A DNA stretch of 63,456 nt, counting the filler, from Reticulomyxa filosa (lineage: Eukaryota; Protista; Foraminifera): the NCBI GenBank assembly GCA_000512085.1. It is 23 parts of 23 records of this genome, joined end to end, with 100 filler letters (N's around TTAATTAATTAA, not from the genome) between each part and the next. Parts side by side here need not be neighbours in the genome. Positions count along the whole stretch, not along the records: positions 15,243 to 27,694 come from ASPP01025049.1; 22 more parts are not named here. One strand, 5' to 3'. Each line of letters begins with the position of its first letter. Position 1 is the stretch's first letter. Below, one piece after another: positions 12,701-27,694 of the stretch. The notes below the pieces were generated by a model. It was not told the DNA's origin. It searched no databases and worked only from the letters and a program-made list of their open reading frames with translations. The translations under genes and the position numbers were made by a program.

Positions 12701-15700
12701 AAGCAACAAATATCACATACACACAAATAAATAATTAATATACGTATAAAGATGTTGTTGAATATGTACATGTATATATATATAAAAATGTACATATTAA
12801 AAACTTTTTCAAGAAATGGACCCAAACACAATTATGACAGGTAACAGGAACTTGGAACAGGCGCACATAAACGACCAATCGAAATGACAACAAGCCCGCA
12901 CATTGTCAATATCCAAGCTTTTTCTTGATTTGATAAATAATGGACTGGTTTTTGAATCGTCGATTCAATTATCATCTGGCACGACGTTGTTCCTTTTGTA
13001 ACAAATACGCACAGCATTAGATCTTCCGTGCACAAATCAAATCGTAAAATACACCCAAATATTGGCGCGAACAACACCAGTCCAATGTATTAAAATAATT
13101 GACAATGGAGTAAAAGATGACATGAACTGCATCTTGTTGTCGACATTATAAGCATCACTGGCGCTGTACTTGTCATTGTCACACCTAGTAATAAACTTCC
13201 ATTGGGGGAGCATTATGTGAAATTAGTCCATATATAAGTGCGCAAAGCCACCACTCGCGGGCGTGAAAGGCCATTTCATAACTGAAGTTACAGACGATCT
13301 TTTTTTTTTTNNNNNNNNNNNNNNNNNNNNNNNNNNNNNNNNNNNNNNNNNNNNTTAATTAATTAANNNNNNNNNNNNNNNNNNNNNNNNNNNNNNNNNN
13401 NNNNNNNNNNTTTTATTTTTCAAGTTATTTTGCAACTAAAAAGTTGTTTTGTTTGTTTGTTTGAACAGCTCGCAAACTCCAAAAAAAATAAAAAAAAGAT
13501 GTCATTTTTGTTTGGATGCCGTGCATCCTTCTGCAAGAGAAAAAAAATAATTGATTATGGGGTAAGGCCCCCCGTCTCCGCAAGGAGTACTAATGGTTTG
13601 GTCTCCATTGATACGTTGTTTTTTTTTTGACGCAATTGACTTTGTTTGTTCTTTGATTAACAGCCTCAACCTGTCTGTTCATAAAACAAACAAATTGTAT
13701 AAGTCCAACTCCCAACTCCCATCAAAGAATAATTTCGGGGTTGAAGCCACCCCGCGTCGCCAAAAAAATGAAAAGGCTTGTTTCTTTTATTTATTTTATT
13801 TGTTATTTTTTTACCAAATGCTTGTGTGTTTGTCAACAGGCATGCCCCCATCAACAAAAAGTCTTATTTGCACCATCCCATAACAAAAAAAAAATATGTA
13901 TAGATTGGAAGCTTACTGCAAATGCATGTAGTTTGTTTTTTAAAAATGAAAAAACTATTTCAATTTTTTAATGTGTTTATAGGGTTCAAGGGCAAAAAGA
14001 ATTTTAAGTTTATTTATCTTTTATTTTTATATATTTTATTTCTATTTGATATCGAGTGATTGTGAACATTGGGGGAAGAAAGAAAATAAATGAAAAAGAG
14101 GGAAACAAATGGGAAAAAGATGGAAAATAAATTGGAGAAAGGGAAAAGTAAACGTGGGATGGGGGAAACAAATGGGGAAAAGGGAAATGAAAATGGGGAA
14201 ATTAGTTGTGAAAAATTTTTATTTAAGGAAATTAAAAATGAATTTAAAAAATGAAGAAAATGTTGAAAATAAAAAAAAAGTGTTCAAAAATTTAAAAGGA
14301 AAAAAAAAACAAAAGTGACAAAGAAAAATAAAGAAAAAAAGAAAAAAAAGATAGAAAAAAAAATTAAAAAAGCAAAAAAAAAAACGAAGAAAAAAGATAA
14401 GAAAAAAAGTAGAATTATAAAAAGAAAAAAGGCAGATTATGCCCTACGCAGCGTTGATTTATTTAAAAAATGGGTTTGCTATTCACGCATGCGAGTGGAG
14501 GCGTTGGCGTTTCGAGCGCACAAGTGGAACGTGTCGTGTGCGTGCGCAAAATCGCAGTTGAATTTTGATTGTGAACTCGTGGGCGACGTTGGGTATTGTT
14601 GGTCGGTGAAGAACAGATAGAGTTGGTTGCATTTTCTGACTTATGTGCCTTGCGTTTGCCGAGGAAGTGCATATTATCTTTACCAAACTGCACCTGAAAT
14701 CGACTATGGAATATGGATGGCGTGTTGGGTAAAGGAAGCAAGAAAAAAGAGGATCAACGAGTATGTCTAATAAAAAAATAGAACACAAATGGTCACTCAC
14801 TCGTTGCAATACTTAAGTCCATTCGATCCGGCCAAAGTGTATCCTTCATCACAATGCCGAAGAGAGCAGATGGATTTGTAATTGGAAATATAACGATATA
14901 AAATTGGGATAGTGCGGCAAGATTCTATCAAATCAATATCAAACAATACCTAGACCTTGGCTCTGTCAAACATAGAAGCAAGTTTGCCAGTAAGAAAAAA
15001 AGAAACGGTGATGGCACGCAAAGTAAGAGCGATATCGATATTATGGTATAGCAACGACAGCAGTGGCCGGACCGACGAAGAAGTGGAAAGTGAGTAAGAA
15101 AAAATCAAGGACATTGTCAAAAAAAAATAATTAACATGGACANNNNNNNNNNNNNNNNNNNNNNNNNNNNNNNNNNNNNNNNNNNNTTAATTAATTAANN
15201 NNNNNNNNNNNNNNNNNNNNNNNNNNNNNNNNNNNNNNNNNNCTCCCATGAAAAAGAACTATACTGAGAAAAAAAAAAAATTGAAAAAAAAGGATAAAAT
15301 ATTGAAATAATTATTAAAGATTTAATAAAAAACCAAAATGATATTTGAAAACTACACGATTTGTATGTATTTTTAAAAAATTAGGTACTGATGTCGTTTT
15401 TTCATGAAGAAAATCAATCATCTATATAAGGTACTGTTTTATTTATCAACTTTATTTTGCATTTTACTGTATCTCACAATAATAAGAAATGAAAAACAGA
15501 TTTGAATTTATTCTAAATTGCTGCTTTCACAAAAACTTTAAAATGTGCTAAATGAAAACTGTCAAATAAACAATCAATTCAAAACAAAGCAATGAAACAA
15601 AAATGTTTAAATTACTTTGTAATTGATAATATTCAGTATTTGCAAGTCATAAATGACAAATTATTAATTCATCTGGCCTTTCTTGGTATTTTCTGGCCTT

Positions 15701-16288
15701 GTGAACAGTCACTAACAATTCGTGTTCCGTAAATACAATAAAAATTTTCTTCTTTTTATTTTTTCTGGACTGCTGTCTTTTCTTTCCTGGGCCGCTTCTA
15801 CGATATATTTTCGTCAATAATGTCGATATTTTCGATATGCTTATCATGTAATAGAGGTTGTTCGGAGATATATATCACCATTTATCTCGAAATACAAATT
15901 GATCACTTGTTTGAGTTTGATCTTAATAATAGAGTGCTTTGATTTTTTTTTAAATGAATTCACTAAATTCGAATTAGTTAACTTATGATATTTCCTCCAA
16001 CTTTAACTTTTATAACATTTTCATTTTAGATATTGTTGTGTTTCTGGAAATTTTTCAAGTATTCACTTGCGTTCCGTTGAATTGTGTAATCAAATTGTAC
16101 ACTTAAAAATAAACAAAAATTCTACTGAAAAATTTACTTTTTTGCTTCTTTTTATTGAAATTAATCGAAAACTATGTTATGACATCACAAAAAAAAAATT
16201 TATTTTAAAAATTTACATGAAATAAACAAGTCTTATGAAATTGGTCACAAAATTGTGCTTCAAGAACAAAAAAAAGAAAGTAATATCA

Positions 16289-19200
16289 TTAAGTATGTGT
16301 CTTGGAAAATCTTGCTCGGTATGCATCAACAAGTGCATTACCTTTTGATCCACCAGTATCTCTGAGTACTTCCTCAGAAACTAAGTTTGTCAGCAGATGC
16401 GAACCTTTCACGGAATTAATATCCAAGGCTTCGCATCGACCATCCGTAGCTGTAGCTATTTCAGTAAAATTTTGTCTTGCTTGCGCATTCACAAAAAAGG
16501 CATGTACACGAATGCCACGTTGTTTTAAAAGTAACAATTCCTCCTTATAGTACGTTGGTTTAGAGAATTTTGTGTTTTTCCAATAATCTTCTCCGCTGTC
16601 ATAAAATCCAACTATTTGTCTTATTGCTGACCCAACAGGCCTGAAGGGACAATCTCTTCTCTTTGTTATTACTTCTTCTTTTGTATTTGCTGGTGCGTCT
16701 CCAATCAAGATGACTTGTGAAACCCCCTCTGTTTCGCACTCTCTGTTGACATGAGCTAATCCAATTTCAATCGCTTCATTGCCCCATCCATAATCTGCTA
16801 CCACGCTTTCCATAAAACTTCGTAGATTCTCAGGTTTTGATTCCCAAGGGGAAACTTGTAAAATCATATCTTCAGGTGCATTATAATTTCGGTAAACCAC
16901 AAACTTCATTTCAAAACTATCGGGAGAAAGTGCATTTTCCTTCAAAATAATAGCAATACGTTCAAACATAGTGCTTACTGTGTTTTTTGCTTTTTGTAAC
17001 AGATGGGACATGGAGCCAGTTGCATCCATAAGCACTACTGTACGTGAAGATTTTTTTTCCTCAGCTCCTCTGTTTCTTTCACATAATATTTTCTTCACTT
17101 CATATGTATTCTTATCTTTTAGCATCGCAACCAAGTGCTGTCCCAATTTGTGTTCTTTTAAGGCTAGTTCCACAAATTTTTTATTTTCTTCATATTGAAC
17201 TTTGAAGTACTTATTTCTCTTTTCATTGAGCACCGGATAAAAGTTTCTTGAGTTTCGTGCACTGTCAATATCTTTTGTGGTAATTAAAAATTTTTCAAGT
17301 GATTTTGCACACAACACCAAGCTGTAGGAACCACTTCCTCCCTGTCTGGCCGTACGTCCTTTGATTTGTATTTCTTCTGACAGTTCTTCAGAAAGAAAAG
17401 TTTGAATCACATGGGGACCACCATTAGCAGACACAATTTGATCACGACACACAAAATCGGTTCCTCTTCCAAATTCTTTGGTGAATAGTCCGATTTGACC
17501 AGATGTGGTGGCACGCTTGATCAACGATTCTTTCTCTTGGAAAGAATTGTCTTCGGTCATTATAATCGCGTAATTTTTTATTGGAAGAAAGTTTGATGAT
17601 TCATAAAATGCTGTTAGCTGTTGTTTAGTCTCAAAAAATATCAAAACAGCTCGTTTTGTTCCTTGATTTTTTCCAACAAGTCGATCGTCAATTTCTTTTT
17701 TAAGTACGATGAAGTAGTCGCTTTCATCGACAACAAGAATGTCCTGTTGTTCTGCAAAGGAAAGATTATTCTTTCCAAACAAAGATGGCATATATGTATA
17801 TTTGGACACACCATAATCACTCTCCACTACTTTTTGTTCTGGTTCGCTCAATGTCTTCAATGTTCCGCTTACTCCCATAATGCAAGAGAAATTTTTGGGA
17901 ACCTCAGCATACGAGAAAGTACCAACTCGAAAAGAAAGACATATATTATTTTTGAGACTTTCAGCACTAATTTTATTTTGTGCATGTTCGTGATAATATG
18001 CAAATAAAGTTTTGTACCCATAGCGTACATCATAGCAAATACTATCTTGCTCTTTATATCCAATCTTGTCATTGCTCACTTGATATCCCGAATCAAATTT
18101 TTGAATGTCATTCAACATATCTTTAATTGCCTCATCCAGCAATGAGTTCCATTCTTTCAATACATTGCAACACTCTTTATATTCATTCGACGTCTGCACA
18201 GTCCTTAATTTTAATCCGGCCGATCTATTGTTCCAAATGAAATTAATAAGTTTAGTGATAGAGTCATGTCGTATCGTAGCTGCAGGCGAATAACAACTGC
18301 CATAAAATTCTTTGTTGAAAAACACATCAACCTCGTCAATCAAGAGAATTTTTGCACGAATCACTCGTGAAATTGCAGATGAGCTCTTTGCTTTGTCAGG
18401 AAGAATCAAGTTTTCCACTAATGTACGTACGTCTCCTCCTTCATTGATAATCCGTTCGCAAAGCTTGTTGAAAGTGCCATAATGGATATAATCGATCACA
18501 CCCAATATATTAAACAACGACTCAAAACTTTTAAAATCTCTGGTACTCAAATATTCACTGTACGAAGCACAATTCACATCAAAACCGAGCAATGCCAATA
18601 CACAACAAGTGATCGCTAAAGTCACTGATTTCCCTTCTCCTGTTCCGATTTGAACTAAATTGCTGATTAATTCGGGTTTGCCTGCATCAACGCCCAACAT
18701 ACGAAATATGGCAATTACTTGAGCTGCATGCGGTTGTGTCAAATAATTATCTTGATCACGCGTACCATTGGCATCATGATAATATTGTGAATTTTGGAGT
18801 GTCCACAAGCAAAAATTTGTGCCATTATAGTCGGGATTTTGTCTCGAATTTTTGCATCCCACACTATGTCATCTGATTTTTGTTCGATACCAGAAACATG
18901 CATTTTTACATTGTTTGCAACTATCTGTAACATTCCTATCTTTTTGCAAATTATCTTTTATTACTTTCCGGTACATGTTCAAAAATTCCTCATATCTTTT
19001 GGCTAACTTTATTTTATCTATTTTGCCCTTTTTGACTTCAATGTGCTGCAAAACATAATCAATTCCGTGCGATTGAGTTTTCTGATTGAATAGTGCAACG
19101 GTATATCCTTTGAACACATTGTGTTCAGCGACAATCATCTCGCCCATTCCAGTTGAGTCTTTTTCTAGACTTAGCGCCAACATTGGAATATCTTTGTACT

Positions 19201-22200
19201 TTCGTTTGTAAGCATTCACGAGTTCATCAATACGGTTGTTAATGACATCCTTGAATCTGAAAATATGTACGGACATTTGTTTCATTGCTAACAGCGATGG
19301 TATTATGCTCTCGATTGTTAAGTTATGTATTGCCTCGTTTTCTAATTGAGTGACCCGATTTCTCACTAAGACATCAACGGCTTCAATTTGAAGCTTCACG
19401 ACATTTTCAAAAATAGAATATTTTTGCATGAAACTCAGGCAACTGTAACTCAGATTGATATAATCACACTCGGCTGCGGTCCAAGTCAAATTTATTTTCG
19501 TCACGAGATTTTGTATTTCCTTCTCTAATTTATCCGGACATTTCTTTAATGTTTCAACATTTGTTACGTGGGAGTTCCATTGCGATATTTGTTTTACAAA
19601 CTCGAGCTTTGCTTTGAGATGCTTGAAAAATCGATCTCTTTCCGTATCATTGATTGTGGTATTATTATTGATGATACCTTCATCCACAATTGATTCCAGC
19701 AGCTTTTGCAACTGGGAATTAAAATCGTGCTTTATCTCGGAATAGGTAAGTAATTTCATTTCTTCGGAAATATTACAATACGCCTTTCTTTTCATAAACG
19801 TTTTCACTTTTTGAAAAAATGCACTCTCTTGTTGGCAGCTATGTTTAGGGTATTAACACTACTAATAAATCTTTACAATTCATATCTTGAAACATCTTTT
19901 TTATGCTTCTCATACAACGAAACAAAAAAAAGAAATGAGCTTGGCATTCAATTCTTTGATTTTATCATTGAAGTTATCAGGTAATAACTCTTCTTTGTCT
20001 TTATTTTCTTTCATTTCAGACACGTCTTTTTTCAATTCAATGCACTGCAGCATAAAATCAAGGAGTTTGGCCATCCATTTTGTGCCATTCACGTCCACGC
20101 TATCACAAAATATAGAATCAATACTCGTGATAATATCGTTGTGACATTTGTTAAGATTACTGACCAAAGTATTGCGAGCAGTGCTGAAAAAATGATTAAA
20201 TTCCTGGATATTTTCTTTGAATAAGACTTTATAACGAAATAATTCTTTCAGCATTGAAAGTGCTCCTTGTGTGTCTTCTTCCATCCATTTTTTTTCTATC
20301 GTCGTGACAATTTCTTGACAAGTTTTTACAAGATGCGTTTGGATCAACTTCTTTTGATCGAGCGTTCCAGTTTTGAGCAAATGGCTAATCTCGTCTAGGT
20401 TTTTTGTTTAATCACCTCATTTACTGCATCTTCAGCATCCTTCATTTTGTGTCCAATATCTTCTTTGTATCCTTTGATTTCTTCCTCCAGATCGCCTTTC
20501 ATGGGTTCGGGTAAAGTCTTCAATACCATGTCACAAAGTCGGGTGCACGACTCAATTTCTCGTGGGGCCAACTGGCCCACTTTATCGCGAATATCACATA
20601 ACAATTCTCGAATCTTTCGAGTGATATCTTCCTGAATTTTGTTCCATGTCTCTTTGTACATGGCATTGGTCTCCATGACTCTTTTCAGCTTTTCATATAG
20701 CTCTTTGGGAGGAAATGAAGAATAGGGATTCGATGTTTGTCCTTTCAGTTGAATAGCTTGGTATTGCTTTACAATTTCCTTCAGTTTATTTTCAATGGTT
20801 TTCTCAAGTGTATCTACACGATCTTAATATTTCCAGAGTTTTCACCTGATTTGCACTGTTCGTTCTCTTCCCTCTTTGTATCATTTTCCCCTTATGCCAT
20901 TGCCATCATTAATTGGGAGAATGGAAGGAGTAGATTTAAAATGATCGCCTAAAATGCCAACAATTCTTCGAATCAGTTTGATTTTGTTTTCAGCTTCCAG
21001 AAAATTCGACGTATTGACGGATGTGTTCACACTATCCAAAACTCCTTCCATCCATTGTTGGAAGATTGCCTTTGTGTCCTCTTCTTTCTTTTCGAAATCT
21101 TTTTGTGCTACTTCATCTACAAATTCAATGACGTATTGTTTTGCTTCTTTGATTTGCTGAAGTTGTCTCTCAACTGTTTCGATCTCTTTCAAGTTAATGT
21201 CATTTTCTCCTAAAAAAATTACTTTTATCCAAATGCTTTGCACCAACTCTTTCAAAGATCGCGTCAGCGAGTTTTTGATCTGTTTGAATACATCTTCAAC
21301 ACGAGCATCACCATCCGCACGCTGTTTGATTTTCGACATTTCCGAGGCAGCGTCCACATAGCGACCCTGGCTAATCGCTTCCAGCACAGGCTTTGTGTCG
21401 ATCACGTCGTCGAGGACCTTCTTTTGGTATTCCAGAAATAGGTCACGGAACTGACAATCTGGTCTGGAAAAGTTGTCCAATGCACACAAGGCTTTGGCCA
21501 TGGCAATCTTGTTTTTCAACGGCTTCAAATTTGTCTGCTGCGCTGCGCTGAGCATCGCATCAGAGAGATTTAAATGGATCTGTCGTAGTTTGATATCGAA
21601 TTTTTCCATGACATCTTTCGGGAAATATTCGAATATCATGAAATGTTGATCCTTCAATTTTTTCACTTCGTTCAATCGATTGTAAATTATTTCCACCTGC
21701 TCAATCGTTTGTGCATTATCACTGTTATCATTTTCACTAACATGTGACAAATTGAGTTGATGCTGGACCATGTTGGAGTATTCTCGTAAAAAACGCTCGA
21801 CCAAAACAAGCGTATTGATGACATCTTGTTTTAAAGGAACAAATGTCTTATTATCCATTTCCTTTATGTCTTCCTCCTCGCCATGTATGGCAGGTCGATG
21901 AGGGGATGTCTTTGCAGTCTTATTGCTTGTCGTGTTTGTAGAAAAGGCACTCGCTTTGCATTCCTTCAAGTAAAGCAAAATCTTTTCTGTTCGCACTGGG
22001 TCCAACACGCCAAAATGATAGCCATTGTAACTTGTTACCTTTGCAATCTCGCGTTCGTACTGTTGATTCACATTCTCCTTTTTCAATGCAAATTCGCGTT
22101 GGATAGTGGCCAATGTGGCTTGAATGGGCTGCTCCAATTGACATACAATCTCTTTGCGAAGATGTGTTAGTTCTGGAATCAATTCTTCCAATCGACGCAA

Positions 22201-25200
22201 TTTCTCCAAATGCGTCACAGTGTTGCGAGCCTCTTCAAGCTGGTCACGGTGATCCAAGTCCAATTCCAATTGCTGACTCGATTGCTGCAGCTCCCACAGA
22301 TGCGATGTCAAACTCTTGGTAATGGCATCCATCAGATTGCTACTTCCTCCTTCTTGACGCTCGTCAATCCATTTCGATCGACTTACACACATCACACACT
22401 CATACAGTCGATTGTAGTTCAATATTGTATTCGGCTTATTCAGGGAATCGATCATTTCGTCAATATCCTTCTGCACCTCACGCACAAATGCAAAGATTTT
22501 TTCAATTATTTGATAGTATTGTCTCTCTGTTCTTTGTTTCACTGATCCCATGCTTCGCAAATCATCCATTACCAAGATCAACTCTTTGATTTTGTCAAGC
22601 GCTTCATATCTTTGCTTTTCAAACAGATATGAAATCCTTTGTCCCACTTTTTCCAAGTACCCAACCACTTCATTCACAAATGAACGAGCCAACTCTTTTG
22701 TCCATTTGTCAAGATCTACATGTGCACATGGCGATTCAAACACAGTTGCTGCGGCTTCCAAAATCGCAAATTTATTTTGCAAAATGTCAATATCAGTTTT
22801 ATCGAGTTTATCAAGTCGAACATGGTCCCCTTCAACTTTTTCGTCCTCCCCCTTTTTTTCATTTGTTGTGGGGTTGTTGATTTCCTTTTTTATTGACTTT
22901 TTCAACACAGCAAATCCTTCTTCCGAGACATGTTTTAGATGCACTAGCAACTCTTTTTCCAAATCGGCAATCTCTTTTCGAATATCAATGAAAGAGCGCA
23001 GCTGTTCTTGAAGAAGCAACGACTTCCCAATTTTCTCCACCTCCTTTCGAAACTCTGCAAATGTATTCTTTCCAATATATTCTTTTGCTTCGCTAACGCA
23101 ACTAAGTAGCCGTTTTTTCAACATTTGGCAAACTGTGGCATAAGAGGCAGCAAAGTCAGGAAAGCAAGTCTGCACTTGTGCAATTTTGTCCAAAGATACT
23201 TGCAAGACATGTATATCTCTTTCCATTTGGGTTGGAATGGCATCCATCAAATCGTCGATTTGTTTTTTAAGATTTTGGTTCAAAGAATTGGCACAAATTG
23301 CATCAGGCAAATAAGTTTGTAACTTTTTCGCAGAAGTTAGTTGAGAGACTACTTTTTGATAGGCCAAGACATCACCTTTGGCAATCGGATGTGAGGAAGT
23401 TATACGTGTGTTGAAGGTCGATTTGGCATGTTCATACGCTTGGTTCCATTCTTTGGTCAACTTTGCCACGCAGTCATTGTACTCATTTGCAACAAGTTCA
23501 TTCTTCAAAATCGAATTCAAGTCCTTGATTTCGTTCAACTTTGCTTCAGCAAGGTTGTAATTGCCTCTCTGAAAAGCCAGCCAAATGCATTCTTTGTGTT
23601 TCTGGACTTGCATGTGCACGCAGATTTGGAAGTTTCAGAAATGAAGGGATGAAAGACTTCGTCAGGATGCTTGATGTACTCCTTCAAATCGACAAGTCCT
23701 CTAACAACTCATTTGGTGAGTCGTTAATCAAATCTGGCGCAATTGTGCCTCTTTTTGTTTTTTTGGCAATATCCCCCAAGATGGCTTGGTACCCTTCATC
23801 GGCCTCGTCTTTTTGTTGCATGTCTCTCAAAATGTCTTTAATTAGAGCATGGATGGACTTGACTTGGTCCTGGGGCCATTTGGTAAATACGTACGAAAAC
23901 GCACTGAGATGGTCAGCTATCGACGGGATAATCGCCACTAATGTACGCGCCAAATCTTTGATACAACTCATGCGATTGCCTTGAGCAGTGTAACTGATCA
24001 ATACCACAGGCTTCACACATGCACAGTCTTGGAGTGCACGAACGATGCCAATGCCATTGGCGACGTCGACCTCGGCGCCATTTGTGTCATCAAACCCCGG
24101 TGTGTCGCAAAGCACGACATCCCCTTTCACATTGAAAATGCTTCGCTCTTTCAAATTGAGTGGGACCGCTGTTATGTATCTTGTCTCGGACTTTGCGTCG
24201 GGGCTTGTGGAACATTGTCCAACGCCTTATTCGCGCTTGTAGTGTCCGGTGCCAGGTGCGGCTTGTCATTGACAAATACCTTCTTCATCTTCGATCCTGC
24301 CAGATAATGTATGAGCGTGGACTTTCCAACTCCAGTGCCTCCGAGCAGCAGTATCACATTCTTACCTTTGATTGCTGTCGCGGCTTCCTCTGTCTTTTTC
24401 ACCAACTCCAACATTAATCTTATGTCAAAGTAATTGCTCTCTGACTTTTTATCAATGCTTCCCGATCTGATTCTGCATCATTCTTGCCATTTATCTCATT
24501 CTCTTTTATTTCATTGCCGTCGCTGTCGTCGATCGATGGCGGTAATGCTGTCGTCTTTTGAATATACCTTTCTTCTCCTTCTTCTTTTTTTTCGTCATTG
24601 CCATCTCCAATATACGCCGACTGCAAATACTCCTCGCGATACTGGTTGCTGCGTGATCCCTCTTGCGTTTCAGTTGGCTGCGCATGCATGCGTCCGTCAT
24701 CTTGCTCACCCTCCGTTCTATAGCCGGAATTGGAATGAACTTTCATCTGCAACCACCATGTGTCACTGTCTTTTTCGGCATATCGAGCTGCCCAAATACG
24801 CTGCAGGTCCTCACCACTTTGGATTCTTTTCTCTTGGCTTTCGTCTTCAAAGTGCACATCATCCGACACATCGCCGACCGCTTGCTTCAAATCTTCAAAG
24901 TGTTGCTTCCAATCCTCTTTTTCCATTTCACCACGAAAATTCGGATTATTCGAATTTTTTGGACACCATGTTATTCTCTTGTCATCTTTCGTTATTCCCA
25001 AGCATCTCTTTTTTTAAAAAAAAAAAAAAGAAATTGAAACAATGAAATTTATATTTAACAATTTGCAAAAAAAAAAAAAAAAAAAAAAGATCTTACTCAA
25101 ACCATTTGTAGTGTATAAAATTCAGCATTTTTATCCTTAATTAGCAAATTCCAAAAATCAAAAAATTCATCGTCATTATCAATATCGTCGTCAATGTTGT

Positions 25201-25492
25201 TTTTATTTATCAAAAGAAATCTGGATGTGGTCGTCAAATGAAGTACTTCTTTGATCGTATTCAACAGCTCTTCCCAGTTTCTCTCTTTCATTGCCTCTGG
25301 CATTCTTCCATCATCACGCAGGTCAGTTGCTTTAAATGTTGCTTTTTCATTCCCATAGGACTCAATTACAATATACTTCGCCTTTGTATGTTTGTGTTCG
25401 TATACGTTTTTTTCGTTACCCCAGTTCTTTCGCTTTGTTTTGTATGTTTTAACGTAGCTAAAAAAAAAGGGAATGGACACACCATCTGCCAA
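16289..25492 (-). CDS. Giant multidomain protein (~3000 aa reconstructed): 2x PB1-like, P-loop GTPase, helical region, SecA-like ATPase, vWA; about 10 frameshifts in the assembly
   Basis: Collinear minus-strand ORFs joined by one GT-AG intron (~25008-25102) and small indels; coding-like sequence is continuous across every break. The 5' end is uncertain. Confidence 0.8.
16310..17045 (-). other. C-terminal vWA domain of the giant protein
   Basis: MIDAS-like VVLMDATGSMS, then YRNY, GNEAIEIGL, VILIGDAP, GIRVHAFFV. Confidence 0.85.
17315..18745 (-). other. SecA-like SF2 ATPase motor of the giant protein
   Basis: QIGTGEGKS, YLSTRD, YGTFN, LIDEVD, GVSGT, RAVLIF, FGRGTDF, GGPHVI, QIKGRTARQG match SecA motifs (TGEGKT, YLAxRD, YGTNN, VDEVD, GMTGT, AGRGTDI, GGLxVI, QLRGRxGRQG) in order. 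Confidence 0.9.
23700..24414 (-). other. TRAFAC P-loop GTPase domain (AIG1/GIMAP/MMR_HSR1-like) of the giant protein
   Basis: G1 LLGGTGVGKST; G2 SETRYITAV (after a 1-bp correction at ~24210); G3 LCDTPGFDDT; G4-like VFTKW. Confidence 0.85.
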
Positions 25493-26781
25493 GTTGGTCT
25501 AGAGAATAGCTGCAAGAATGAACACAATTTAAAGATTCAAAAACGGATTTTTTTGAAACAAGTTCCGTCTGGGAAAGTATTTTTTACATAAAGCAGGAAA
25601 CAGCCAAGTCTGTTCAAATAATATTTTTCGTTTTTGTACAAAGCAGAATTTTTATCAAACATGTGAGCTAGATGGAATTACTTGAACAACATTATATCCA
25701 TTTCAATATTAAGTAAATATCAAAAAAGTTCGAAACCGAATAACATAAAAAATTAGTGCTGATGGCACCAAAAGGAAAATACAGACGTTATATAATTTTT
25801 CGCTAATATTTTAATCTGGACGAAGGGAATATTTGAGTGAGAGAATACTTTAATCCGAACAAAAGACAGATAGATGTTATATTACATCAAAATTAACACA
25901 GCGCTTGTTCTCTTTGTAGGTTTGTTTATGTTGAACAAGAACGCTTCGTTGTTGCAACCACAATTTAAATTGAATGAGTATGTGTATATTTTTGTTTGTT
26001 TTTTGTTTATGTTTTCTAATAGTGAGTTCCAATCATATCCGTACAAGATTTTGCAAAAAAATAGAGTTTGTTGAAAGTCTTTAATTCTATTTTTTACGTG
26101 AGCTATTTCAAGGTTATTATGTTCTTGCAATTCTTTTGTCTTGCAGCCTCTTTTTCTGATTTATTGCCATTGTTGTAATGTGTTTGTCACTTGTACCAGC
26201 GCAAGCAAACACTGTTGTGATTTTGATTCGAGATCTTTAGTGAATTCTTGAGACCGCAAAGATCAATTATCAAATATTGTCGTAATTTCCTTGAAATGGG
26301 CTAAAGTTTTTTTCTTGCTCCCACCTTTCATTATTCTCTGTATTTCCTTCGCAACACTTGCTTGGATGTCTCCAATACGACTCCGCACTGAAACAATTAG
26401 CCACCGGACAACACCACGTAAAATCTTTCCAAAATTCAGTTTCAGAGGTCTGTTTTCATTGTATTGAATTTAGCCATTTTTTGGAGGGAAATTTTTCGTG
26501 TATGAATTTGGTGACTCCAATTTTTTAAAACCGTCAAAAGAATTCTTTTTAAAAACTTTCCGTTGTCCTTAGTTCGGAAAAAGGTGCCTTGTGGTAATGC
26601 CTATTTGTACTTTGCAGAATAGAAGCTGTAGTATTTTTAAACAGTTTGAACACCATTTTAAATGTTATGAATATTCGGTGCTATTTTATATCTGTTCCCT
26701 ATGTCAAGAAGTCGGCTTTGTACTACAGTGACAAAGTACTTGAACGCTATTGCTGGGAATCCTTCGCTATGTGGATATACA

Positions 26782-27006: not shown

Positions 27007-27446
27007 TACAGTTCGGATAATATATTTCACAACATTGCTTTTTGTCATTCATGCTTTTTCTACTAAAATATTGTCTTACTTATGATCTTTGGAAGTTTGC
27101 ACAACCTCCCCTACTAAAACACATAAAACTTCTTATTTATGTGGATTAAAAGAGCAACATTACGCAAATTCAAGAGCGCGCATAAACTTCTCGTATATAA
27201 ACATTTTTATTGGCACACGCATGTGAGGTTTCCTCCCGCGTCAACAATATTGAATTGTCGAAGTTTATTTAAGAAATCCAAAATGAAACGTTCAAAGTCG
27301 ACAACAAAGTGAAAAACAGATTGTCAGCAAAATTATGGATAATTTATCGAGTTAAAAACAAGTCATAAAACACGATTCAAGCCACATTTTATCCTTTGTC
27401 AAAAAATCGTTCAACTTTTTAATAGAATTCACAAGATTTTTGGAGC

Positions 27447-27694
27447 TTAATAGCGCGGTTTATGACGATCTCTATCGTCTCTTTCATTTCTATCGTTCCT
27501 GTCGCCTCTGTCATTTCGCTCACGATCAGTTCTATCATTTCGGTCGCTTCTTTCAGTTCTATCACTTCGTTCAGATCTATCAATTCTTTCAGTTCTGTCA
27601 CCTCTATCGTTTCTGTCACTCTTATCGTTTTTGTCACTTCTGTCGTTTCGATCATTCCTTTCATTTCTGTCATTTTTATCAACTCTATCATTTC
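27447..27694 (-). CDS. 3' end of a protein with an (x-D/E-R)n tripeptide-repeat tail
   Basis: 9-bp periodic repeat; the frame absent from the ORF track reads NDRVDKNDRNERNDRNDRSDK...DRDRHKPRY-TAA. Confidence 0.7.

Follow-up and report, generated by a model that had tools for sequence, protein, structure and literature searches.

A giant multidomain gene in Reticulomyxa filosa

Reticulomyxa filosa is a naked freshwater foraminiferan. The window analysed here is a 63,456-nucleotide stretch from its genome assembly (GCA_000512085.1), composed of 23 parts joined end to end with filler, and all positions count along this whole stretch. One of the parts, from a contig of 12,452 bp (ASPP01025049.1), carries on its minus strand a gene spanning 9.2 kb that is predicted to encode one polypeptide of ~3,030 residues, with the core order GTPase-helix-motor-von Willebrand A (vWA) domain that is fixed across its family. 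A first-pass annotation had proposed such a fusion and described it as one reading path. The location and strand hold (25492/25498-16289, minus strand), but the path is not a single open frame: nine open stretches in three frames between 25498 and 16292 make it up, and assembling them requires one 95-nt GT-AG intron and at least 13 single-base frame corrections. The resulting coding path (25498..16292, ~3,030 codons) is supported by homology and runs from two N-terminal units of ~90 amino acids (aa), through a GTPase, ~1,600 aa of helix and a SecA-type DEAD motor, to a vWA domain with a metal-ion-dependent adhesion site (MIDAS; Table 1).

Intact relatives show the same modules in one protein. 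A paralog in the same genome (locus L082, contig ASPP01003559) has a single open reading frame (ORF), whose 2,407 codons begin ahead of the GTPase and reach into the SecA-like motor. Searching 1.84 billion cluster representatives (50% identity) with HMMER and the motor-vWA module returned 4,355 relatives, of which 1,061 reach E<1e-30. Many of the relatives are single ORFs of 2,700-3,600 aa with the motor-vWA module at the extreme C-terminus, and nearly all of 62 retrieved relatives of at least 2,400 aa have an N-terminal P-loop and DxPG motif, with the P-loop anywhere from residue 112 to residue 788. The N-terminal extensions are variable, occasionally containing a U-box, C2 or ankyrin domain. 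Three homologs of 2,903-3,088 aa (P0121, P0123 and P0125) are collinear with the window from the GTPase through the C-terminus, across all of its frames, in tblastn alignments. The intact paralog ORF and these ~3,000-aa collinear ORFs bear out the proposed fusion of GTPase and SecA-vWA parts in one giant polypeptide; in homologs the two parts lie in intact single ORFs, not in separate genes.

Table 1. Features of the giant gene, from the 5′ to the 3′ end of the coding path (L082 and L083, paralogous R. filosa loci)
Feature	Position	Strand	Basis or remark
Exon 1, N-terminal unit 1 (~95 aa, beta-grasp-like candidate)	25103..25498	-	Open stretch; 64% identity to L083 3090-3386
Spliceosomal intron, 95 nt, GT..AG, phase 0, T-rich	25008..25102	-	Edges conserved, interior diverged
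Exon 2 start, N-terminal unit 2 (~90 aa)	24738..25007	-	56% identity to L083 3460-3729, 25% to P0002
Acidic low-complexity linker, one frame change at 24480-24420	24445..24737	-	No homolog alignment
GIMAP/Toc34-like TRAFAC GTPase	23690..24444	-	Breaks at ~24218 and ~23697; 63-66% identity to L082
G1 P-loop, GGTGVGKST	24342-24316	-	Invariant in 30 homologs
G3, DTPGF (DxPG)	24106-24092	-	Invariant in 30 homologs
~1,600-aa alpha-helical region, no known domain	18810..23689	-	Collinear with L082 and P0121/P0123/P0125
SecA-type superfamily 2 (SF2) ATPase	17069..18809	-	Pfam SecA_DEAD, phmmer, motifs, fold model
Walker A, first nucleotide-binding domain (NBD1)	18640-18626	-	Motif I
DEVD (NBD1)	18337-18326	-	Motif II
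Motif VI (NBD2)	17368-17339	-	QIKGRTARQG
C-terminal vWA with MIDAS	16304..17056	-	Pfam VWA, conserved ligands, fold match
MIDAS, D-A-T-G-S	17026-17012	-	Followed by NEA and GDAP, carrying the conserved Glu and Asp
Stop codon TAA	16291-16289	-	End of the coding path

Frame breaks in the window copy

The open stretches were compared with the intact L082 ORF by a frameshift-aware dynamic programme. Between 24444 and 18470 this alignment contains 12 single-base frame changes, eight deletions and four insertions, at approximately 24218, 23697, 23620, 20892, 20818, 20405, 19930, 19884, 19849, 19826, 18925 and 18809. The frame map places a 13th between 24480 and 24420, and a T9 run close to the 5′ end may mark another. 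After correction the path has zero stops over ~2,860 codons (about 2,000 + 859), and the shifted segments, read in their own frame, still give conserved protein. The apparently in-frame TGA at 18871 is an artefact, because the segment around it is read in the wrong frame; the neighbouring frame (...IPTIMAQIF...) is the true one and matches homologs. An alternative genetic code or stop read-through was rejected for this TGA on the same ground, and programmed +1 frameshifting of the Euplotes type was rejected since the shift sites are not located at stop codons.

The ~13 breaks are probably indel errors of the assembly rather than true decay. By our estimate, neutral decay that yielded 13 indels should also have yielded several stops; because these are missing, and no stop is left after correction, assembly error is favoured. 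Among R. filosa paralogs dN/dS is 0.14-0.21 (0.21 between the window gene and its closest paralog) and dS ranges from 0.66 to saturation. The paralogs are old, and purifying selection acts among them.

The window copy may nevertheless be broken. A genuine, recently inactivated pseudogene, with real mutations and with function confined to intact paralogs such as L082, is the less probable explanation but one to be taken seriously. It would account for at least 13 frame changes within ~6 kb, mostly outside long homopolymers, and for the wide differences in the state of the paralogs within one assembly, where L082 has about one break and L084 has many. Homopolymers of four or more lie near only 4 of the 12 aligned frame changes, compared with 22% of background positions, so the signature of pyrosequencing-type error is weak. 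The assembly was probably built from 454 and Illumina data. No reads cover the break points. Among public sequencing runs, only two 'synthetic metagenome' runs, with 13% of the sequence words, matched the locus, and each, when mapped on 18800-24799, gave four short contigs that are identical to the window and cross none of the frame breaks. What argues against a pseudogene is the lack of any nonsense substitution in the corrected codons, the conserved protein still encoded by the shifted segments, and the low dN/dS relative to the closest paralog.

A SecA-type motor followed by a vWA domain

SecA is the bacterial and plastid motor that drives proteins through SecY, and most other SF2 enzymes act on nucleic acid. 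The motor motifs GTGEGKS, DEVD, GVSGTL, GRGTDF and QIKGRTARQG are present in this order and invariant or nearly so in 35 sequences. Pfam SecA_DEAD matches at 36.9 bits (cut-off 24.6) and Helicase_C at 20.3 bits, and phmmer matches in the PDB are confined to SecA chains. The complete, ordered set of SecA motifs reported at first pass is therefore present, in its SecA variants and with a Pfam match above cut-off. A model of the 859-aa motor-vWA module (predicted local distance difference test, pLDDT, 83.7) matches SecA in Foldseek at E 9e-18; UvrB, DinG, DDX21, Mss116 and the defence helicase Hna are weaker, at ~1e-7. VIA aligns 508 residues to SecA with Z 24.3 (model residues 3-637). Between DEVD (residue 178) and motif III (335) lies a helix-and-hairpin insert of ~150 aa, at the position of the PPXD of SecA. 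After NBD2 the model continues with helices at 521-598, one of them long and scaffold-like, and then with the vWA domain from residue 605; most SecA structural alignments finish by residue ~637.

The motor is specifically SecA-like, yet not canonical SecA. The helical wing domain, two-helix finger and C-terminal tail of SecA are not seen in the motor-vWA model, and the NCBIfam models for SecA and SecA2 score 23-56 bits against cut-offs of 725-1,493, values far from those of a canonical translocase. Apart from the buried core of NBD1, the protein has no transmembrane-like segment, which points to a soluble protein.

The SF2 DEAD core fold, the Helicase_C score and the helicases among the weaker fold matches would also suit a nucleic-acid helicase or translocase, in which case the giant protein would sense or remodel RNA or DNA. 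We regard this as unlikely: the Foldseek E-value of SecA is ten orders of magnitude better than that of any helicase, the 508-residue SecA alignment covers both the PPXD-position insert and the scaffold helix, and the motif variants DEVD, GxTGT, GRGTD and RGRxxRQG are the SecA forms.

The C-terminal domain is a MIDAS-type vWA, as first annotated. Its Pfam VWA score of 24.1 bits is barely above the cut-off of 23.8. Of the MIDAS ligands, T617, E698 and D724 show no variation in the 35 sequences and D615 and S619 hardly any, and VIA finds the fold of an integrin beta I-like domain (Z ~18, model residues 605-845).

GTPase and helical region

In addition to the invariant G1 and G3 motifs, the switch-I Thr within SETRY is invariant among the 30 homologs, and their alignment shows a conserved box after switch II. 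G4 is degenerate in the same alignment, reading (F/Y)TK ('FTKW' in the window), and the conserved Asp is missing. Of the complete G1-G4 set that had been described, G1-G3 thus stand and G4 does not. A model of the paralog GTPase (pLDDT 92.1) has GIMAP1/7/2/5 and Toc34 as its top Foldseek folds (E 7e-6 to 1e-4), in keeping with the AIG1/GIMAP type first suggested. Profile searches do not add to this assignment: Pfam AIG1 has no match, and RsgA_GTPase and MMR_HSR1 match weakly, below their own cut-offs.

The ~1,600 aa of helix reported between GTPase and motor are confirmed, from ~23690 to ~18810, with a longest intact piece of 917 codons (23634-20884). This region has no match in Pfam, NCBIfam or PADLOC, and an Atlas search with it returned low-TM helical-repeat look-alikes only, which are uninformative. 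Every catalytic and metal-binding motif is conserved, and the two NTPases and the MIDAS are therefore probably active.

N-terminal units, intron and nuclear origin

The two N-terminal units had been called PB1-like, which the profile search does not bear out: neither unit has a Pfam match, PB1 included, even at E 10. The Atlas matches of unit 1 are all ubiquitin-like folds (GRHL1_C, TDP-43_N, PB1, CIDE-N) at low scores of 0.77-0.86, and hhalign finds a weak similarity between units 1 and 2 (E 9e-4, probability 23%, 69 columns in register). With these weak beta-grasp and mutual similarities as its leads, 'PB1-like' is at best a guess at the fold.

The two units are separated by the intron, which lies at the same codon in the paralogs, at L083 3387-3459 (73 nt) and L082 2290-2361 (72 nt). 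The exon edges are conserved across the three paralogs; the intron sequence and length differ. GC content is 24-35% in the flanks and 35-48% in the gene, and no ORF longer than ~90 aa was found in the 1 kb downstream or 2.2 kb upstream flank. A tRNA search found none. Separately, an imperfect tandem repeat at 27525-27694 runs to the contig end (period 18/27, ~9 copies, 66-73% matches); on the minus strand it forms a repetitive 90-aa ORF (27419-27691) rich in Glu, Thr and Ile.

The locus is a nuclear gene of R. filosa, because its intron sits at a conserved position and its flanks are gene-poor and AT-rich. The family is common among intracellular bacteria, and the closest non-foraminiferal relatives in our tree include proteins from gammaproteobacterial metagenome-assembled genomes (MAGs), which might suggest that the contig belongs to a bacterium in the R. 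filosa culture, either a symbiont or a contaminant. This is highly improbable, given one GT-AG intron position shared by three paralogs, the ORF-free, AT-rich flanks on both sides, the grouping of seven R. filosa copies in one clade with saturated dS, and a WD40 gene that adjoins the paralog L084.

Public annotation of the locus

The 859-aa C-terminal ORF is 100% identical to a deposited R. filosa protein of 1,418 aa (P0001) labelled 'Helicase conserved domain containing protein'. This model spans 20676-16292 only, without the GTPase and most of the helical region, and crosses single-base frameshifts via artificial 'introns' 19-65 nt long. Such mini-introns were rejected as not real, because the intact paralog is continuous across the homologous sequence. 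The R. filosa paralog loci are also divided in public annotation, into two to four gene models each. Several separate genes as publicly annotated, with P0001 as one of them, or alternatively a canonical organellar SecA, can hardly be what the locus encodes, since the mini-introns are invented, other genomes carry ~3,000-aa single ORFs, and the NCBIfam SecA/SecA2 scores fall far short of their cut-offs. Our analysis corrects the public annotation, which splits the locus and spans its frameshifts with artificial mini-introns.

Distribution of the family

Eukaryotic members occur in R. filosa (at least 10 gene models), the bdelloid rotifers Rotaria, Adineta and Didymodactylos, Hexamita inflata and Ectocarpus, with further members in EukProt and MMETSP transcriptomes. 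In a scan of species-representative genomes, relatives are nearly confined to host-associated bacteria (Legionellales, Parachlamydiaceae, Simkaniaceae, Rhabdochlamydia, Wolbachia, Tisiphia, Mycoavidus and Francisella), and several of these are single ORFs of 3,000-3,500 aa. Full-length single-ORF members lie in bacterial contigs that include Legionellales, Chlamydiae and Gammaproteobacteria. The closest full-length homolog, on a bacterial contig, adjoins Cys/Met metabolism genes, a ferredoxin gene and mscS, and a Legionellales MAG has a full-length member near dnaE, tilS, accA and a PARP-ankyrin gene. The PARP-ankyrin gene (L001 21906-24239) lies two genes downstream of the giant one; its product, with ankyrin repeats, has an architecture typical of eukaryote-like effectors.

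A quick maximum-likelihood tree groups the seven R. filosa copies in a single clade (support 100), whose sister group includes the gammaproteobacterial MAG proteins P0121, L004 and L006 (support 91). Bacterial and eukaryotic members interleave, and the deepest branches, with distant relatives as outgroup, are bacterial; the tblastn matches of these deep members span the motor part only. The fusion was first described as eukaryotic, but it is not confined to eukaryotes: the same full architecture is present in bacterial contigs with dnaE, tilS and accA nearby, and the taxa are interleaved. Clearly, genes of this family have passed between eukaryotes and bacteria, in one direction or in both.

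Motor-only relatives are found in Wolbachia and other Rickettsiales. Six loci from Chlamydiae, Legionellales and Wolbachia (L013-L016, L020 and L022), on deeper tree branches, match only the motor, over query residues ~12-567 at most, with no vWA match seen; the motor-only Wolbachia ORFs are ~1,500 aa long. A search of plasmids gave distant SecA-like matches only, and a phage collection gave none. Distant SecA-like or DEAD-box genes on the plasmids CP113870.1 (Candidatus Megaera polyxenophila) and NZ_CP110822.1 (Candidatus Bandiella woodruffii) align with NBD2 of the motor at 27-31% identity; both bacteria live in symbiosis with the ciliate Euplotes.

Two further observations concern the neighbours of bacterial members. 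At four loci a TPR_1/TPR_2 protein of ~175-215 aa is encoded directly downstream of the giant gene (L003 13905-14429, L006 12193-12840, L011 12617-13147 and L021 13092-13703), with 32-39% mutual identity; this small protein may be a conserved partner of the giant one. Beside the giant gene of L003 lies a 1,159-aa ORF (14429-17908) that is a paralog of the GTPase (49% identity) and helical parts and has no SecA-vWA half, and therefore the GTPase-helical half also exists alone.

Discussion

We consider it fairly probable that the window gene represents an uncharacterised family of cytosolic polypeptide machines at the host-bacterium interface, built from a GIMAP/Toc34-like GTPase, a helical scaffold, a SecA-type ATPase and a vWA domain with MIDAS. 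Our best guess at its working, drawn by analogy with known systems, is an NTP-gated machine that grips polypeptides. As in midasin and the MoxR-vWA adaptors, the MIDAS would capture a protein ligand at one of the ligand's acidic residues. The SecA-like motor would then use ATP to grip and pull or remodel the captured polypeptide independently of SecY, in analogy to the SecA clamp of motor lobes, PPXD and scaffold helix. The G domain could gate assembly or membrane docking by nucleotide-dependent dimerisation, as in GIMAP proteins and Toc34, and the variable N-terminal units may serve as recruitment adaptors, two beta-grasp-like units here and U-box, C2 or ankyrin domains elsewhere. The setting would be the interface of eukaryotic hosts and intracellular bacteria, which we infer because the distribution is patchy, expansions are lineage-specific and members are present in intracellular bacteria.

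Several points weigh against this reading, besides the scarcity of homopolymers at the frame changes and the uneven state of the paralogs described above. A polypeptide rather than nucleic-acid substrate and a role in immunity are conjectural, and so is GTP specificity, G4 being degenerate. The GTP-gated unfoldase or effector, plausibly anti-pathogen, that was proposed at first pass is likewise a conjecture. The overall dN/dS indicates conservation, unlike the diversifying pattern typical of immune receptors. PADLOC defence models have no match in the motor-vWA module or the helical region, and those that match the P-loop region, mad8 and LeoBC, do so weakly. We found no RNA or protein support for the window locus, and its start codon and 5′ end are provisional; an upstream ATG at ~25493 is in another frame, ahead of the T9 run.

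A bolder proposal, which we hold to be rather doubtful, is that the family constitutes a hitherto undescribed class of dual-NTPase cytosolic machines, with a SecY-free SecA motor, a GIMAP-like gate and substrate feed through the MIDAS, shaped by host-bacterium conflict and repeated exchange. Such a machine would extract or unfold proteins; protists and rotifers would deploy it in cell-autonomous conflict, and the bacterial copies would be effectors or mimics.

A SecA-type motor within a soluble protein of ~3,000 residues would, if true, be a new use of a textbook translocation motor. The family is large and has expanded in foraminifera and bdelloid rotifers, which makes it a specific candidate for a so far unexplored mechanism acting between hosts and the bacteria inside their cells. 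The literature that we searched holds no functional study of it, only passing mentions of such domains. The eukaryotic association module of phage WO is reported to include a 'SecA' domain that is nearer to invertebrate than to bacterial proteins (PMC5062602; also PMC9203015), and Amoebophilus effectors are reported to include GIMAP-type GTPase domains and SecA-like helicase-related domains (PMC3482391). Secondary SecA_DEAD proteins have been linked to type I secretion (PMC4452313); a key-term search of that paper finds no mention of a GTPase, von Willebrand domains or Legionella, and thus no sign of the window architecture. The remaining SecA-like mentions in the literature searched are different proteins.

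The 'eukaryotic-like SecA' of phage WO and the SecA-like domains of Amoebophilus probably belong to the same motor superfamily as the window protein. They differ in that the Wolbachia match is limited to the motor (ORFs of ~1,500 aa, matching residues 12-526 of the motor-vWA module), and in that the domain is mentioned in passing, with no function given. The window GTPase shares G1-G3 and the box after switch II with the TRAFAC GTPases GIMAP/AIG1 and Toc34/Toc159, which include its nearest solved folds. Unlike them, the family has a G4 that lacks the Asp, has no Pfam AIG1 match, and carries the domain inside a giant multidomain protein.

Midasin/Rea1 and the MoxR-vWA systems offer the closest parallel to the overall layout, in which a long helical linker ties an NTP motor to a MIDAS domain, and this domain grips a protein ligand. 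The MIDAS of midasin binds ubiquitin-like domains. The motor of the present family is SF2 and SecA-like, not AAA+, and homology to midasin is limited to the vWA fold. With SecA and SecA2 the family shares the two-lobed DEAD motor, the SecA-type motifs I, II, III, V and VI, the insert at the PPXD position and the long helix after NBD2, at an identity of 14-18%. Its motor forms the far end of a soluble protein of ~3,000 aa and occurs also in the eukaryotic cytosol, where no SecY partner is known; and in place of the wing domain, two-helix finger and zinc tail of SecA, it carries a vWA domain.

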